64,000 nucleotides of DNA, from sequence record MZ475897.1; one strand, given 5' to 3'. Below are positions 8,096 through 15,615 of this stretch, one piece after another. Every line of letters starts with the position of its first letter. Positions within the stretch are counted from its first letter, which is position 1. Below the pieces are notes generated by a model. It was not told where the DNA came from. It worked only from the letters and a program-made list of their open reading frames with translations, and did no database searches. The position numbers were made by a program, and so were the translations under genes.

Positions 8096-10969
8096 TTAGA
8101 TTTCGTCAGGTTCCCAACACAGAATAGGACGGCGATACACTTGGAATACGCCAGTAGGTGCGTAGCTTGAGCTAAGGTATTCTTTAGCGTTTGTACTGAG
8201 GCTACGTTCTGACGTAAGCAACTGTTGCCTGTTGTGCGTCCACTGACAACGACCACAAGACTCTGCTTCGATACCCGCATCTGAGTCCCAACCAGGCACG
8301 TCGAATGTTTTGTTCCATCCGTTGAAGTGGTGAGTAGACACCGCTCCGTTGCCTGTTGCACACAGCACCATGTACTGATAGTCAGACTCGAAGTAGATAG
8401 GCACGTTACGGCCTGTAGGGATAGAAGGACCATTAGCGTTATACGTCAATTGCCAACCAGTACGGTCTGCTGAGCCTGTAGACATGAACAACGGTCTACG
8501 GATAATCATCATGATACCGTTCTGCGTTCCGTTGTCGCTAGTCTTGGTGCAGTACGCATTGCAGCGCAGCGCACGGTCAACAGTGAACAACGTACTGTTG
8601 GAGAAGTCAGCATTGTACAGGTTAGCCGCCCACTGAGGTAAGTTAGCAGCTTCTGGTACAATGAAGTGACGCTCTGCCAGTTCCAGATCACCGTAGCGGT
8701 CATAAGCAAACACGATATACTCGTAGCCTGCATCGATCTGAATGTTATGTCCTTGAGAACCCACGCCAGTCCACTTCCAAACAATCTGCCAGTCGTTAGT
8801 ATCACGTCCAGGCGTATCGTTTATCAGGCCGTACTTGCGTTCGTATATCTGCCACACACGGGAGCCGCCAGTCGCAGCAAAGTATAAGCTGCCTGGATTA
8901 GAGCGGTCACCACCACAACGAGTAAGATGGTCGGGTCCTGCTTCGTTGTAAGCACTGGCTCCGCCTACACCGTCAAACATTTCCCAGTTCATCATCAAGT
9001 GAGAGGTGCACAACTCATTCGGTCCGCTATCATCAGTTGTCGTAACGAGATATTCATACTGATCAGCAAACGGGTAGTAGACAGTCTCTGTTCCTGCCAT
9101 AGCGACACGCCGAACCCAATCGTGTGACTGCACTTTAGGTACAGGGAAGCAAGGGTTAGTCACAGACACGACGAAACTTTTAGTCTCGTACATCGGCAGC
9201 TTTTTGAATCGGTTATCACGAATCGTTACCGTGTGCTTCATGCCGTAAGTCTGTGCACCGTCCATACCGCCTAGCACTTTGTAGTAGCTGAGATGCGCAC
9301 TCTTGGTGCTCTCGTATAGCCCCGTGATGCCAAGCGACATTGCGCTGTTGCGGTCCGTACCACAGCAATACTGATTGCCGTAGCTGTCATACGCGAAGCC
9401 CACAGAGAAGTAGCTATCAGGGTCAGACGACTGAGGTCCGTAGTACATCTCAGTAGGCGCATTGCCCTCACCAACACCAGGCAGGCCAAAGCAGCAATAG
9501 CAACCGCGATACTGATACTGTCCGCCTTCGTACACGCGACGAGAAGCACCTATGCGATACATAGCACCAGCAAGTCCGCCTTGAGTACGGTTAACGTTCG
9601 CCGTGTCATAGGAAACGACATAAACAAAGTGGTCGGCGCCAATCGAGTTCAGGAACGCAGCCATGTTAGCAGCATTCGTTGTTCCTGGTGCAGTACCTTC
9701 GGCCGAAACGTGAATGTCATACGCTCTGCGATCTACGAGCACTTGGTCGGACTTGCGAATCTTGTACACGTTGAAGCCGCGAGAATCTCGGTAGTACACG
9801 CCATTCACATACGTGTAACCAACATCGCCTGTGTCAAGCGTGCGCTGATAACCTACGATGTGGCTGAACACGCTACTACGCGCTTGCAGACTCGCACCGT
9901 TATCGTTCGACCAGTTGACAGATACATCACCAGCAGCCATACGCGCAGCCCAATCATCAGGCTTGTATGGGTAAGTGGTCACGTCAAAGTTAACGCCATA
10001 CGCACTGCCTATTTCTACGCAGCACGGGTCACGATAGATGATCTCTGGGTCAAGAATAACATCGTCAGGAATATCGACTTGACCACAGTACATCTGACGC
10101 CACACACCAGCTTGACCGCCGATAGAACCCGGGCCAGCAGCACCTGCGCCAGAGTTGAACTGGTAAGCAGCAGACGCACGGTAGTTCTTTTGGTTGCTTA
10201 ACTGTGGAACGTTCAGCCAGCCTACGTGGTCACCAAAAGCATTGATGGACTTAGAACGCGCAGCCTGAGTAGCGACAACGTTAGCAGCACCATTGCTTGT
10301 GATACCAAGCGGACTAAAGATAGCGTTGAAGTTAACGTTACCCTCGTACGGACCTTTCTGGAGTACAATCAAGCTGACGCCGTTACGGTGTGCTTCACGC
10401 AAGGCATTAAGCATCGCAGTAGGCATCGACTGACCGCTAGACGACAGCAGCAACATAACGCAGGACCATTGCTGGAAATACTTGTAGGTTCCGTCGTAAC
10501 CGTAAGCACCAGCATTGATTTCATCCCACGTATGAGACAGCATATCAAGAGGCATACGCTCAAGATAGTGAACAAGCTGTCCCCATGACTCCATTGCAGA
10601 TTCATCATCCACAGAAGCGCCATCACTAATGACCAGCATCGTCGAGCCAGCAGTGATGTTAGAGTTATATGCACGCTCGGTCAGGAACTGGCGCAGCGCA
10701 CCCATGTTGTTAATTGTGGTATTGCGATAGTTACCCATCCAGCCGTAGCCGTCAGTAACCATTGGACTATCACTGCGAATGAAGCTACCGTTCATATACA
10801 CAGAACCGTAACCGCAAACATACGCGAGAGCATGACCATCAACAACAAAGGATGTGTAGCGATTGCTATCAACGCCCATCGCATCAACAGCAGCTACGGA
10901 GCCATCGCCCACACCGCCAGTAAAGACAGGAGTAATGCCTCGTGCATACAAGCAACTTTGTTGCAGCAT
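8096..10969 (-). CDS. Large Cys/Tyr-rich virion protein with an ILEI/FAM3 (GG-type lectin) domain
   Basis: RGFNVYKI...YD...AAFLNSI...VYVVSYD...MYRIG...YRGCYCCFG matches the ILEI pattern at about 9440-9790. Confidence 0.7.
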   Translation of the reverse strand: MLQQSCLYARGITPVFTGGVGDGSVAAVDAMGVDSNRYTSFVVDGHALAYVCGYGSVYMNGSFIRSDSPMVTDGYGWMGNYRNTTINNMGALRQFLTERAYNSNITAGSTMLVISDGASVDDESAMESWGQLVHYLERMPLDMLSHTWDEINAGAYGYDGTYKYFQQWSCVMLLLSSSGQSMPTAMLNALREAHRNGVSLIVLQKGPYEGNVNFNAIFSPLGITSNGAANVVATQAARSKSINAFGDHVGWLNVPQLSNQKNYRASAAYQFNSGAGAAGPGSIGGQAGVWRQMYCGQVDIPDDVILDPEIIYRDPCCVEIGSAYGVNFDVTTYPYKPDDWAARMAAGDVSVNWSNDNGASLQARSSVFSHIVGYQRTLDTGDVGYTYVNGVYYRDSRGFNVYKIRKSDQVLVDRRAYDIHVSAEGTAPGTTNAANMAAFLNSIGADHFVYVVSYDTANVNRTQGGLAGAMYRIGASRRVYEGGQYQYRGCYCCFGLPGVGEGNAPTEMYYGPQSSDPDSYFSVGFAYDSYGNQYCCGTDRNSAMSLGITGLYESTKSAHLSYYKVLGGMDGAQTYGMKHTVTIRDNRFKKLPMYETKSFVVSVTNPCFPVPKVQSHDWVRRVAMAGTETVYYPFADQYEYLVTTTDDSGPNELCTSHLMMNWEMFDGVGGASAYNEAGPDHLTRCGGDRSNPGSLYFAATGGSRVWQIYERKYGLINDTPGRDTNDWQIVWKWTGVGSQGHNIQIDAGYEYIVFAYDRYGDLELAERHFIVPEAANLPQWAANLYNADFSNSTLFTVDRALRCNAYCTKTSDNGTQNGIMMIIRRPLFMSTGSADRTGWQLTYNANGPSIPTGRNVPIYFESDYQYMVLCATGNGAVSTHHFNGWNKTFDVPGWDSDAGIEAESCGRCQWTHNRQQLLTSERSLSTNAKEYLSSSYAPTGVFQVYRRPILCWEPDEI

Positions 10970-11012: not shown

Positions 11013-13034
11013 TTAGCCAAATACAATCTCAGTGATTGCAAGATACGTCACATCGTTTGAGTCACCACGGTCACCAGAACCGTAGGCCATCAACCAAATC
11101 TCTTCACCTGCAGGGATGTTAGTGTCGAATGTGATACGTTGCAGAACGTTAGCGCTTGAGTAGACACGCTGCGCTGCACCAGCACCTGCATAACGTTCGT
11201 AGATGGACATGTCGTGCCAGCTACCGTTATTACCATCAAACACCCAATCAAATGTGATTCGCTTGATAGGTCGAGTGAAGAAGTTATTCCACTTGAACCA
11301 ACCATTCGAGCCACCCCAGAAGTTCATATAGCTGCCGTCCCAAACTTTCAGGTTCTCAATGCCACCGCTGACTGTACGACCGCCAGTCTGTGTGAATGCA
11401 TAGCAGTACCATGGGAATGGATCTGAATCAGGCGGCTGTGAGTTACCACCAGCAACTGTGATGCAGCGATACGGAACTGTGAAGTCTCTGACGTTAATGT
11501 GCGGAGGCTGAATCGGGCAGTACACATAGTAAGACCAGTCACACCCGATAGGGCCTGTAACGCGCACTGTGATTTCAGAACGCAGAACATGCTCAGGGTA
11601 TTTCCAGAACTCAAGTGTACCGACAGAGCCTGCTACGACAATTGACGTATCAAGCAGATTCATATCACGGTCAAACACCTCGAACTTGGTATCGAATGAG
11701 TTAGCAACGCATACGACCAGCTCGGCTCGGATATCTGTCTGTGTGCCTAACGCAAAATTATCTTCTGTGGTTGGATGACCGGCAGAGTAAACGCTGTAGC
11801 TTTGGCACGGATGCATGAACTCACGCGCACCTCGCTCCGAAGGACAATAAAGGCTGTAGAAGAAGCTGTCAAGGGACTCGGCGTTTCCAAAGTCTTTAGA
11901 TACCACGCGCACCATAATGTCACACGCGATGTTCTTAGGGTCAAAGTAGAAATACAGATAACCCTCAAGTGTCTTCGCATCAAGCGTTGTTGCAATACGT
12001 CTACCGTTTTGATACACCTCAATGAAGTCGAGCGTTTCCCATGAGGTATAATCAAGGTACATCCAGCCTGCTGTCCAGCCCACAAAGTGATAATACTCGA
12101 ACGCGTTAGCATTCTGAATACGCTCTGCAATAGGCCACACTGAGGCATGACACGGAGCTGGGAATACTGGCGTGCCGATATAGTCAGGATTGATAACGTC
12201 AGGGTAATTGATAACGTCATATGCAGCTTGACTATCGAGCGCTAACCCACCACGGTCAGAAGGTGCAGAAAGCAGAGGAGGATAAACCATCATGCTCCAG
12301 CCATAGCCTTGAGTTGTGCGCACACGTATCATGATACGCATATCGGCAGCGTCAGGGTCAAACTGGAACTTGATGCGAGAACGTCCTGTTACTTTGCCGC
12401 AAGATGAAGCTACGCGCACGCCCATGTGATAGACGTCAATGCTTGCACCAGCAGGCGCATACGAAGCAAAGTTAACTTCGACGTAACCTTCAGTTGCAGG
12501 CAGCGCATAGATCGTTTCAGTGATAACAGCACCACGACCGTGAGTAGATGCATAAGGCACGTTTGGGTTAGCATACGTACCAAGACCTGCTCTCGATGCT
12601 ACACCTACAGGGTCATAAGACTCAAGCGTCTTAATGCCTGGACGATTGATACTGCGACCAGTTGGCGGTGCTGACGAGTTGACAACACCGAAGCCTGTAC
12701 GACCCGCATCAGGCAAGTCGAATCCTATTGGATAGCCGCCAAGAATCGTGTAGCTTTCACGACCACCACTGCCTATACCGTTACCGGAGCCTTTGGTTGT
12801 TGACGTAGGGCCACCGCCACATGCACCTGTTTCAAGATTCGAACAGGGATCATCATAGGTAGGGTCAAACGTGTCATCGATTAAATGCCAGCGCTTGCCC
12901 CACTGATTACGCACGCTGAACTTCTCAGGCGTTAGAGGAGTCCAGTCACCTTCCTTGGTGCGAACGTACATGGGCGTATCGACACAATCAAGCCAACCGT
13001 TATTCGCAGCATTACGAACGCGAAAACGTGACAT
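11013..13034 (-). CDS. Virion fibre protein with three tandem ~90-aa beta-sandwich repeats
   Basis: Repeats ending I-x-VRV...(W/F)-S/Y-x-x-V/L-Y-(C/P)P at three positions. Confidence 0.65.
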   Translation of the reverse strand: MSRFRVRNAANNGWLDCVDTPMYVRTKEGDWTPLTPEKFSVRNQWGKRWHLIDDTFDPTYDDPCSNLETGACGGGPTSTTKGSGNGIGSGGRESYTILGGYPIGFDLPDAGRTGFGVVNSSAPPTGRSINRPGIKTLESYDPVGVASRAGLGTYANPNVPYASTHGRGAVITETIYALPATEGYVEVNFASYAPAGASIDVYHMGVRVASSCGKVTGRSRIKFQFDPDAADMRIMIRVRTTQGYGWSMMVYPPLLSAPSDRGGLALDSQAAYDVINYPDVINPDYIGTPVFPAPCHASVWPIAERIQNANAFEYYHFVGWTAGWMYLDYTSWETLDFIEVYQNGRRIATTLDAKTLEGYLYFYFDPKNIACDIMVRVVSKDFGNAESLDSFFYSLYCPSERGAREFMHPCQSYSVYSAGHPTTEDNFALGTQTDIRAELVVCVANSFDTKFEVFDRDMNLLDTSIVVAGSVGTLEFWKYPEHVLRSEITVRVTGPIGCDWSYYVYCPIQPPHINVRDFTVPYRCITVAGGNSQPPDSDPFPWYCYAFTQTGGRTVSGGIENLKVWDGSYMNFWGGSNGWFKWNNFFTRPIKRITFDWVFDGNNGSWHDMSIYERYAGAGAAQRVYSSANVLQRITFDTNIPAGEEIWLMAYGSGDRGDSNDVTYLAITEIVFG

Positions 13035-13045
13035 GTACTATCTCC

Positions 13046-13537
13046 TTACGGTCTGACCCAGATAGCGCCTGCTGGAACTTCTTGATCTTGAGCAGGGTCA
13101 GTATCCTGGACGAAGACAGCTACCACACCTGGGTTTCCAGGAGCACCGGTCGGACCTGTAGCACCAGTAGGGCCCGCAGGACCACGAATACCAACATAGC
13201 CTTGCTTTCCTGGGAGACCATCGATACCGCGAGGACCAACACAGCCGTCAGTACCGCGCTTACCATCAGAACCCATTAAGCCATCGATACCGTCACGACC
13301 AGAAGCACCAACACCGCCTTCAGGACCATAGCCGATGCTGTAGATGGTAGGCAGGCCAGAGATAGCGAGCTTTCCGATACTCGGAATATTAATAGACAGC
13401 ACACCTGTCAGTTGATCGAAAGCGCCTTGCAGCGTTGTTTCGTCTTCGGCAACATCAACAGACACACCACCTTGAGTTGCTACTACCTTACCAGACGCAT
13501 TCGTCTTGAGTAGCGATATATCAACCTTTTCTACCAC
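13046..13537 (-). CDS. Collagen-like fibre protein B
   Basis: Gly-X-Y run; shared FDQLTGVLSI...GLPT module; C-terminal DTDP...GAIWVRP; GTG start with GGAG SD. Confidence 0.85.
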   Translation of the reverse strand: MVEKVDISLLKTNASGKVVATQGGVSVDVAEDETTLQGAFDQLTGVLSINIPSIGKLAISGLPTIYSIGYGPEGGVGASGRDGIDGLMGSDGKRGTDGCVGPRGIDGLPGKQGYVGIRGPAGPTGATGPTGAPGNPGVVAVFVQDTDPAQDQEVPAGAIWVRP

Positions 13538-13546
13538 GAGAACTCC

Positions 13547-14179
13547 TTATGGCCATGTGGTGCCTTGATCTTTAGTTGGGTCGACCCAGAGCGTACCTGC
13601 GGCTACAGCTCCCGGCTGGGTAGCGCTAACGATAATTGCAAGACGACCGGAAGGACCTGCAGGACCAGTTGGGCCAGTAGGACCAGTACCACCAGTAGAG
13701 CCAGTAGGACCAGTACCACCGCGAGGACCAGTAGGTCCAGTCGGCCCCATAGGTCCTTCACGACCTTCTCTGCCCGTAGGCCCAACATTACCGTCACGGC
13801 CATCACGGCCATCCGGGCCTGGTATGCCTTGCTCACCATCAGGGCCCACAGGACCTGTACAGCCTGGGCCGCCCGTTGCACCATCACGACCATCACGACC
13901 ATCTTTTCCGTCTGCACCTGTTTCACCTTTCTGACCTGTACGACCTGCTGGAATATCAGACGCAGTTGGGAAACCTGAGACTTTCAGACTACTGCCGTTA
14001 GCAAAGCGCAGAGTCAACACGCCCGCAGTAGCGTCATACGAGGAATCTGACGTGACTTCTGATGGAGCTTCGGACTCAGCACTGTTAACAACAAGTGTGC
14101 CGCCAGATGCTCGGACAGGTGTTGCAACAGAGCTTACGCCCGCAGCGATTAAACTTGTTTTTACCTTTATCAAACTCAT
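13547..14179 (-). CDS. Collagen-like fibre protein C
   Basis: About 35 Gly-X-Y triplets rich in GPT; shared N-module; C-terminal ATQP...GTLWVDP. Confidence 0.85.
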
Positions 14180-15615
14180 TACGTCTTCTCCGCCTGAGCA
14201 GTCATATCCGTGTTATGAGCCAGAACATCACCAACGAAATAGCAGTCGAAAGGTTCAACGTCTATGTCTACGGTATTAACGAGTTGGTCTATACGACGAC
14301 ATTCGTATACAGACACAGGACCTTTGCGCCCTCTGACTTGCATTCCTTGCTTAACTTCACGAGCAGGAACATAGCGCCATTGCTTATCATCATAGATCAG
14401 CACAGGATGTTCGTGCGTAAACTTCTGTCCATTAATGACGAAGTAGTGATCTTCCTGACCATACTTGAGTGCGCGCACAGCAGCATAGACATTCTTACCT
14501 TTCAGACTTGGTGAGGACCATTTACGGAACTCTTTAGGCTGATTGGAGAACGATGCAAGCATATCGCCTACAGACAAACGTTCAACAGGCACAGAGCCAG
14601 CGATTGTATGCACAGTAGAGCCGAACACGATACAGCCAGATGTTTTACTCACAGGGTTACGTGCCACTACGGTCAAAGCAGATTTCACAGTGACTGTAGG
14701 ACGAGACGGTTGCCCCATGTCTGTTACTAAACAACTGATGGTGCCTCTGATAGTACGGTCAGCACCGAGACCAAGACGCAGATAGAAGTTAACTATGCAT
14801 GTGTTAGTCTCTATGGCGTCAAGGTTAACGCCCTCAGTTGTTGTGATTGTCCACTTGTACTTGTATGGACCCACACCGCCACGCGCATTGACAGGCAGAT
14901 AAGCAAGCGAGGTGAATACGTCAGACCCTTGTACTGTGCGCGTGCCTACCATGTACAGACTAGACACAGAAGCAACAAGTGGGCTGATAGTAGGAAGAGG
15001 AGGTGCTGGCGATACGTTAGCAGTCGGGTACAGCCACACGAACACGTTAGATGCAGTGGGTTGCACATTAGACAGCACAGCAGTTTCGATAGGCGCAGGA
15101 CCTGTAGGACCCGTTGCACCTGCGATACAGCTTGGACCGTCATTGCCTCGTGGGCCGAGTATGCCAGTAGGACCCGTTGGACCGATTGGCCCTGTAGGTC
15201 CGTCTTTACCGTCAGGACCCGTGTCACCGTCAGGGCCAGTAGCGCCATCACGGCCAGGCTCACCCGCAGTGCCATTAAGACCTCTAGCACCAGGGAGACC
15301 ACCACAGCCGTCAGCACCAGTAGAGCCATCACGACCGTCACGACCGTCACGACCCGCAGCGCCTGGCGCACCTCTCTTACCTTGCTTACCTGAACCAAAC
15401 ATTGCACTCGTAGGCAGGCCGGGGATATTAACTAAATCCCCATTCTGTTTGATGAGTACGAGCACGCCGTTCTTACTGTCAAACTTTACGCTTGCGATCT
15501 GTGTCGTTGTCAACACATCGGAGGATTCGAATTGAATACCACCAGCAACAGCAACAACCGATTTACCTTCATCGTTGCCTGTTGTCTCGATTTGCGAAAG
15601 TTTTAAGTCTGTCAT
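14179..15615 (-). CDS. Collagen-like fibre protein D with Ig-like domain and C-terminal Hint domain
   Basis: Gly-X-Y run; Hint motifs C1 (CIVFGS), TxxH (THEH) and terminal HN followed by Thr. Confidence 0.85.
14212..14634 (-). other. Hint (intein-like) domain, 141 aa
   Basis: Cys codon 14632-14634, FTHEHP, His-Asn at 14212-14217, +1 Thr; no homing endonuclease. Confidence 0.8.

Follow-up and report, generated by a model that had tools for sequence, protein, structure and literature searches.

The question raised by this locus is what a Hint domain, followed by only ten residues and a stop codon, does at the very end of a phage fibre. The fibre is a 478-aa collagen-like protein encoded in a stretch of 64,000 nucleotides (hereafter, the window) of sequence record MZ475897.1, which belongs to the Erwinia phage pEa_SNUABM_21, a 265-kb "hairy" jumbo myophage of the genus Snuvirus whose host bacterium is Erwinia amylovora. 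A first-pass annotation of this DNA, made from the letters alone, had described a collagen fibre ending in a catalytically intact Hint domain with a short C-extein. On balance, we are inclined to interpret the last 151 residues of the protein as an autoprocessing Hint domain of the bacterial intein-like (BIL) kind, similar to the A-type, plus a short tail, that is, as a module that would remove itself from the fibre and that is not a true intein.

The assignment of the Hint fold can be considered secure on the basis of the relatives of the domain and of its predicted structure. A phmmer search against 1.84 billion representative sequences retrieved 264 relatives at E<=1e-3; the scanning of 73 relatives against the Pfam thresholds assigned 36 to PT-HINT (best E 6.6e-34), 24 to Intein_splicing and 13 to Hint. 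The AlphaFold2 model of residues 322-478, for which 46 relatives served as the alignment, has a predicted local distance difference test score (pLDDT) of 93.5, and its comparison with the PDB by Foldseek gave 56 matches at E<=1e-3; among the 50 matches listed, all are BILs, inteins or Hedgehog proteins. The top match is 2LWY, the BIL domain of Clostridium thermocellum (E 1.9e-8, TM score 0.71/0.80), followed by the Tetrahymena BUBL BIL2 (6Y75/6TMM, E 4e-8), by mini-inteins and by Hedgehog (1AT0/6TYY). The same 2LWY is the best PDB match at the sequence level, with an E-value of just 0.02 in phmmer and an alignment spanning from immediately after Cys1 to the terminal His-Asn. The two domains share Cys1, the TxxH motif and the His-Asn pair, and in 2LWY, too, the residue at +1 need not be a nucleophile. 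No NCBIfam profile matched the fibre protein, and no other Hint domain was found within the window. The domain measures 141 aa, the size of a mini-intein, and folds continuously, without any insert, which leaves no room for an endonuclease. Both the presence of a Hint domain and the lack of an endonuclease, as claimed by the first-pass annotation, are thus borne out.

The same is true for its reading of the active site, since Cys1, TxxH, the terminal His-Asn followed by Thr and the ten-residue tail up to the stop are all found in the translation of the open reading frame (ORF). The span that it had singled out (14179-14634) runs exactly from the codon of Cys328 (14634-14632) through the stop codon (14181-14179), the sequence around the N-side junction being ...TSG|C328-IVFG and block B corresponding to T400-H-E-H403. 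The residues C328, T400, H403, H467 and N468 are invariant in seven phage orthologs, whose identity goes down to 31%. Among the 150 best representatives of the relatives, the aligned positions are occupied by Cys1 in 120 of 120 cases, by the Thr and the His of block B in 161/169 and 159/168, and by the penultimate His and the Asn in 160/161 and 159/160, respectively; Gly precedes Cys1 in 70 of 111. The pairwise ratio of nonsynonymous to synonymous divergence (dN/dS) of the Hint segment is 0.09-0.16, like that of the rest of the gene, values that are approximate because of the saturation of dS. Judging from these sequence comparisons, the domain is under purifying selection and kept functional, in agreement with the catalytic integrity proposed for it. 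All the residues needed for an N-S acyl shift and for the cyclisation of Asn are present, pointing to a putative autoprocessing activity.

If the domain is active, is it an intein? The arrangement H467-N468|T469 of the fibre protein is the one of a canonical intein, with a terminal His-Asn and a Thr at +1, and this Thr is kept in four aligned Erwinia-phage orthologs (SNUABM_21, SNUABM_2, Y3 and Yoloswag). Elsewhere, position +1 is taken by V (Yersinia phage fHe-Yen9-02), M (Afa-NA1) or A (NCTB), and the metagenomic orthologs have A, S, L or R there; Ser, Thr or Cys occupy this position in only 11 of the 92 relatives with a short tail. The reading of Thr+1 as the start of an intein-like C-extein, put forward by the first-pass annotation, does not therefore hold beyond the closest phages. 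Furthermore, the ortholog that the Dickeya phage JA11 carries at the same position (49% identical, 324 aa) is Hint-less: it terminates with ...ARNPK, six residues short of the Gly327|Cys328 junction, and nothing in it corresponds to the tail. This implies that a fibre can work without the Hint domain and without the tail, and that the functional end of the fibre lies at or before Gly327. The non-conserved +1 residue and the Hint-less ortholog lacking a C-extein rule out a true intein as the conserved mechanism; moreover, a canonical intein occupies a conserved site within a conserved protein, which the fibre Hint domain does not.

The A-type BIL domains possess Cys1 and a conserved terminal His-Asn, do not need a nucleophile at +1 and reside in variable regions of non-conserved proteins (PMC7765530). 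The same traits were found here: Cys1 and the His-Asn are conserved, the C-flank is often devoid of a nucleophile, and the domain is housed in a variable region of a non-conserved surface protein, the tip of a phage fibre. Indeed, in the relatives the domain preceding Hint can be Ig-like, Calx-beta, fn3 or PASTA, and the very presence of Hint varies between sister phages. A-type BILs likewise sit on variable, non-housekeeping host proteins and lack an endonuclease; the fibre domain differs from them in being the terminal domain of a phage fibre, followed by a tail of 10 aa, and in having a Thr at +1. Since the +1 nucleophile is not conserved, the fibre Hint domain behaves, as far as its sequence indicates, as a BIL domain and not as a true intein. 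Pfam, NCBIfam and PHROGs contain no profile specific for BILs, and for the A-type sequence blocks (Amitai et al. 2003) the closest solved structure, a BIL, gives indirect support only.

The tail itself exhibits a strong pattern. Lys is present in 89 of the 92 tails of 1-15 aa, versus 29±4 (maximum 44 in 2000 draws) in length-matched control C-termini taken from 113 ORFs of related phages, a small and phylogenetically narrow set. It accounts for 15.2% of the tail residues versus 3.9% in the remainder of the same proteins (a 3.9-fold enrichment), whereas Arg and Gly are depleted (0.54-fold and 0.69-fold, respectively) and Asn is unchanged. At least one residue follows the Asn in every short-tail relative, and where there is one residue only, it is Lys. 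Also in the case of internal or tandem Hint domains, Lys is found within positions +1 to +10 in 56 of 67 and exactly at +1 in 38 of 67, random 10-mers giving 25±4. In the phage group of pEa_SNUABM_21, the Shine-Dalgarno site of the downstream gene (GGAG) falls within the codons of A475-E476-K477; across five diverged phages the octamer GCGGAGAA shows no variation, synonymous positions included, and the dS of the tail is 0.6-0.7 versus 1.4-2.7 for the Hint domain (the tail comprising ten codons only). This suggests that part of the conservation of the tail, namely that of A-E-K, is exerted at the nucleotide level. On the scale of the whole family, Shine-Dalgarno or A-rich codons as the full cause of the tail Lys can be ruled out by the depletion of Gly and Arg, by the lack of enrichment in Asn and by the one-residue tails. 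The enrichment in Lys but not in Arg or Gly suggests that an amine is favoured over charge or over Shine-Dalgarno codons. Although the chemical role of the Lys is putative, this rule favours a reaction in which the tail is involved.

On this basis, and by analogy with the chemistry of the Hint family, a possible course of events can be depicted. After folding, Cys328 would attack the carbonyl of Gly327 (N-S acyl shift), so that the fibre would be held by a thioester; a nucleophile of the tail would then resolve it. In pEa_SNUABM_21, Thr469 might play this part, as in classical splicing; for the family as a whole, better candidates would be the ε-amine of the tail Lys (here Lys477), for which the BUBL BIL2 offers a precedent (PMC8616854), or the α-amine freed by Asn cyclisation. 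Asn468 would finally cyclise, cutting the tail from the Hint domain. The products would be a fibre of about 36 kDa in its mature form, with Gly327 as its end and at most a 10-aa peptide attached to it, and a free Hint domain of 15.5 kDa that would not be part of the finished fibre. Resolution by the tail is favoured because the His-Asn, the tail and its Lys have all been retained, and plain hydrolysis of the thioester is less likely.

Self-cleaving C-terminal modules are known on trimeric phage fibres: the Peptidase S74 chaperone domains, such as those of the K1F endosialidase and of the T5 L-shaped fibre, are absent from the mature particle. The likeness to the fibre Hint domain is one of functional analogy only, their fold being unrelated and their chemistry based on a Ser-Lys dyad, and the Pfam scan of the fibre protein revealed no Peptidase_S74 match. 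The terminal position pointed out by the first-pass annotation is nevertheless shared with S74-type maturation modules, as well as with Hedgehog. By this analogy, the Hint domain might act as a transient C-terminal cap, or as an assembly aid, on the distal Ig-like domain, and would be dispensable in those lineages that have lost it or never had it. It is also possible that it represents a nearly neutral passenger domain.

Two other families of Hint proteins can be set beside it. Hedgehog (1AT0) shares the Hint fold, the C-terminal location in the precursor, the Gly-Cys cleavage site and the removal of Hint from the functional N-terminal part; it differs in having a sterol-recognition region after Hint and in lacking the terminal His-Asn, whereas the fibre protein has a 10-aa tail and an invariant His-Asn. 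Membership of the Hedgehog type was ruled out on these grounds, since no sterol-recognition region can be accommodated in the ten residues that follow and the His-Asn is present. PT-HINT, a Hint peptidase near the C-terminus, is the best Pfam family among the relatives; it sits immediately before the toxin domain, which it releases (PMC3482391). In the fibre protein only 10 residues follow Hint, and the next gene encodes a collagen-like paralog, not an immunity protein; the polymorphic-toxin reading was consequently discarded.

A bolder interpretation, which we regard as speculative and distinctly less probable than its contrary, is that Hint and the Lys tail form a self-contained excision module, widespread on phage tail proteins, that makes an isopeptide bond without ATP by linking Gly327 to the ε-amine of Lys, in a Gly-Lys bond of the ubiquitin type. 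The acceptor Lys would be the one of the tail peptide or, even more boldly, one of another protein of the virion or of the host surface, and the near-universal Lys after the His-Asn would be the signature of a lysine-directed Hint branch otherwise documented only for the ciliate BUBL locus. The BUBL BIL2 joins the C-terminus of the N-extein to the ε-amine of a Lys without ATP (PMC8616854). It is the second-best fold match of the fibre domain, and a Lys follows the domain both here (K477) and in almost all the short-tail relatives; the fibre protein, however, lacks ubiquitin-like flanks, and the isopeptide product is hypothetical.

Some findings weigh against the idea of a self-removing BIL-type module, or at least against the part assigned to its tail. 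The Pfam matches of the fibre protein itself are sub-threshold (Hint_2 with 21.3 bits, cut-off 28.4; PT-HINT with 16.7, cut-off 27.7), so that the fold is established through relatives and structure instead. In the pEa_SNUABM_21 group the Lys codon adjoins the GGAG, and here Lys could be a by-product of it; the control for the lysine rule is, as said, a narrow one; and the position of Lys in the tails ranges from +1 to +12, clustering at the final two residues, a variability that would be odd for a nucleophile whose place is fixed. Dispensable as the JA11 ortholog shows it to be, the module could also be a neutral passenger without any role. Although phrog_38766, named 'virion structural protein', matches the fibre protein along residues 1-478, that name is an annotation only; no biochemical or other experimental data on processing were found in the searchable literature, and the AD1/JA and PaBG papers contain no peptide-level data on the fibre protein.

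The competing explanations differ in the fate they assign to the thioester. The first-pass annotation had itself named three outcomes, namely the release of a folding chaperone, the splicing of the short tail onto the fibre and a covalent link to another molecule, all of which are candidates. According to one of them, the domain cleaves itself by hydrolysis only, in the S74 style or as in the non-cholesterol side reaction of Hedgehog, the tail and its Lys being chemically idle and Hint, which would depart with the tail or without it, serving as an intramolecular aid to folding or trimerisation. The terminal position and the Gly-1|Cys1 pair fit this scheme, as does the JA11 ortholog, which stops close to the junction and bears no addition; BIL domains have been reported to cleave at either end (PMC7765530), and the conservation of the tail within this clade is accounted for by the Shine-Dalgarno site. 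We consider it rather improbable all the same, in that it leaves unexplained why the terminal His-Asn is kept in about 100% of cases, why at least one residue always follows the Asn, and why Lys occurs in 89 of 92 tails with Arg depleted. A genuine class-1 mini-intein, in which Thr469 would attack the thioester and splicing would join fibre and 10-aa tail through an ordinary peptide bond, is quite unlikely: Cys1, TxxH, His-Asn and Thr+1 are all there, and Thr+1 is kept in the four Erwinia-phage orthologs, but orthologs of 31-57% identity have V, A, S, M, A or L at +1, no conserved protein is interrupted by the domain at a conserved site, the JA11 ortholog has no counterpart of the C-extein, an endonuclease is absent and the closest structures are BILs.

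A third scheme invokes a covalent transfer, with the Gly327 thioester attacked by a Lys of another virion protein or of a molecule of the host surface, which would anchor the fibre. BUBL BIL2, so close in structure, does conjugate its N-extein to lysines of other proteins, and the Gly-rich or Gly-1 linker ahead of Cys1 resembles the C-terminus of ubiquitin; on the other hand, there is no partner signal, the built-in tail Lys makes an intramolecular reaction likelier, the thioester would have to persist in the particle, and JA11 manages without the module. We therefore hold this transfer to be very improbable. Lastly, the domain might undergo no processing and be retained as a permanent structural or receptor-binding tip, as the full-length annotation as a virion structural protein and the lack of data supporting cleavage might suggest. 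We can give this hardly any credit, because it is exactly the catalytic residues that are invariant in very divergent relatives while the remaining domain drifts to 25-30% identity.

The self-removing BIL-type module favoured here is not confined to pEa_SNUABM_21. A Hint-bearing fibre is present in all the Snuvirus and Alexandravirus genomes, in Y3, Yoloswag, pEa_SNUABM_5, Dickeya AD1 and Yersinia fHe-Yen9-02, and Afa-NA1/Sen-NF, NCTB and metagenomic phages possess more distant copies. The 150 best representatives include 106 domains whose alignment covers Cys1 through Asn; in 56 of these, 1-15 aa separate the domain from the C-terminus, and collagen repeats occur in 17 proteins of the set. 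The metagenomic relative P0010 is encoded in the same tail module, with Calx-beta replacing the Ig-like domain, and P0029 is located after an NlpC/P60 tail gene, a position that we read as lambda-J-like. Among the BFVD matches there are phage proteins whose names refer to fibronectin type III, PASTA and tip attachment protein J; in some of them an Ig-like and a Hint part are combined, as in the fibre protein. The corresponding tail module of phage NCTB has three terminal Hint domains. A Hint domain placed at the C-terminus and followed by just a few residues is thus a recurrent, movable appendage of phage tail proteins, and it appears to be common in those of metagenomic phages.

Some of these proteins deserve a closer description. 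Those of NCTB (L007:4483-4944 and L015:2420-6334) are the fibre ortholog of 506 aa, a stand-alone protein of 153 aa, with a 7-aa leader before the Cys and a 3-aa tail (KVD), and a protein of 1304 aa with a terminal Hint domain and a 7-aa tail. In the metagenomic relatives P0004, P0039, P0042, P0059 and P0093, two or three Hint domains stand back-to-back, each followed by a Lys at +1, one of the proteins reaching 3399 aa; these are tandem BIL arrays. A 265-aa protein of the Ruminococcus phage NatCom_3870 (L008:4001-4798), with a PT-HINT match (E 3e-36) at residues 5-145 and 120 aa beyond it, has the layout reversed with respect to the fibre proteins, with Hint first and the cargo after it.

The presence of a Hint domain on phage fibres is already recorded, since in GenBank the Y3 gp110 is noted as "putative phage tail protein, contains intein domain" and BN7874_136 of NCTB is named likewise, and BIL domains are known; the lysine rule is a new lead. 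The searchable literature yielded no work on the function of Hint domains that terminate phage fibres, nor any mention of the Hint-less allele or of the lysine rule. If the excision is true, a second, chemically different class of self-removing C-terminal fibre module would stand beside the S74 chaperones. If, in addition, the lysine rule is mechanistic, lysine-directed ligation without ATP, known from a single ciliate locus, would operate in a large family of viral domains as well, and this would be a source of small natural Hint domains working at non-nucleophilic junctions. If, on the contrary, the domain is a mere passenger, it would be an ordinary annotation detail, already in GenBank. 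The "hairy Myoviridae" or "Lupandier" group to which the phage belongs also includes Y3, Alexandra, Yoloswag, Dickeya AD1/JA11, PaBG, Lu11 and NCTB (PMC6143709; PMC7412058), and the proteins that form the hairs of "hairy" jumbo phages are reported as unknown (PMC6143709); the Hint fibre bears on how such hairs or fibres are built.

The coordinates of the fibre gene, of its parts and of the two genes that follow it are listed in the table.

Features of the fibre gene and of its downstream neighbours (positions refer to the window)
Feature	Position	Strand	Description	Basis
Whole gene, 478 aa + stop	14179..15615	-	Collagen-like fibre protein with C-terminal Hint domain	ORF list
N-terminal domain, residues 1-73	15397..15615	-	Common to both downstream collagen-like paralogs	Alignment; PHROG tail-fibre matches
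Collagen-like G-X-Y region, residues 76-174	15094..15390	-		Pfam Collagen E 1e-13; triplets counted by script
Middle Ig-like β-sandwich, residues 176-320 (~145 aa)	14656..15090	-		AlphaFold2 two-domain model all-β, pLDDT mostly >85
Flexible linker PVSKTSG, residues 321-327	14635..14655	-	Last residue is Gly-1	pLDDT <50 at model residues 148-150
Hint (BIL-type) domain, C328 to N468, 141 aa	14212..14634	-		AlphaFold2, Foldseek, phmmer, conservation
Cys1 codon	14632-14634	-	Hint landmark	
TxxH (T400-H403)	14407-14418	-	Hint landmark	
His-Asn (H467-N468)	14212-14217	-	Hint landmark	
Post-Hint tail, 10 aa, T469-T478	14182..14211	-	Thr+1, Asp+2, Lys+9 (K477)	Translation, then stop
GGAG Shine-Dalgarno site of downstream gene	14188..14191	-	Inside tail codons A475-E476; downstream ATG at 14179-14177	
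Downstream collagen-like paralog, 210 aa	13547..14179	-	Without Hint domain	
Second collagen-like paralog, 163 aa	13046..13537	-	Without Hint domain	

The protein is the ortholog of Y3 gp110, of Yoloswag gp103 and of the corresponding proteins of Alexandra and AD1. Its ORF is intact, with no breakage, and belongs to a module of tightly packed tail genes: its ATG overlaps the stop of the upstream gene, coding for 779 aa (ATGA), and its stop overlaps the downstream ATG (TAATG), which indicates translational coupling with both neighbours. The collagen region embeds 29 unbroken G-X-Y triplets (residues 76-162), a break of three residues (C163-I-A) and three further triplets. The description of the first-pass annotation, a collagen fibre ending in Hint, is correct in that both the collagen and the terminal Hint are real, but the two are not contiguous, the β-sandwich of about 145 aa and the 7-aa linker intervening between them. 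The β-sandwich is 43% identical in the JA11 ortholog, whose protein stops directly after it; it represents the variable distal domain of the fibre and probably faces the receptor. The linker is variable, with a dN/dS from about 0.4 to >1.

The region 13046-15615 (strand -) thus contains three tandem collagen-like paralogs of 478, 210 and 163 aa, with the N-terminal domain in common. They also share a conserved Cys within the collagen region (C104 in the 478-aa protein) and, beyond it, a Q-P...W..P motif; only the first possesses the Ig-like and Hint domains. In Yoloswag, a free-standing HNH endonuclease gene (L004:4663-5520) lies between the 163-aa paralog and the homolog of a 673-aa protein that the window encodes at 11013-13034; it is absent from that place in the window. 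The Yoloswag (L004:5530-6456) and Afa-NA1 (L006:5619-6845) homologs of this 673-aa protein bear the label 'putative large intein domain protein'. Among the proteins scanned in full, Hint is absent from those of the window and of Afa-NA1, for which the label was rejected, and present in the 1304-aa NCTB homolog, from which the label seems to have been carried over. The Alcaligenes phage Afa-NA1 (PV550095.1, 78 kb) and the Salmonella phage Sen-NF (PV359490.1, 108 kb) gave equal tblastn values for the module of the fibre gene (identity 34.0%, E 2e-22, 98 bits) despite their very different stated hosts, which may reflect an identical segment or an issue of assembly or of the records. Finally, the tail module includes, at 8096-10969 (strand -), a 957-aa protein with an ILEI domain (Interleukin-like EMT inducer, PF15711, E 4.3e-7, above threshold), unusual for a phage tail gene; the JA11 homolog of this protein likewise bears the annotation 'ILEI domain-containing protein'.

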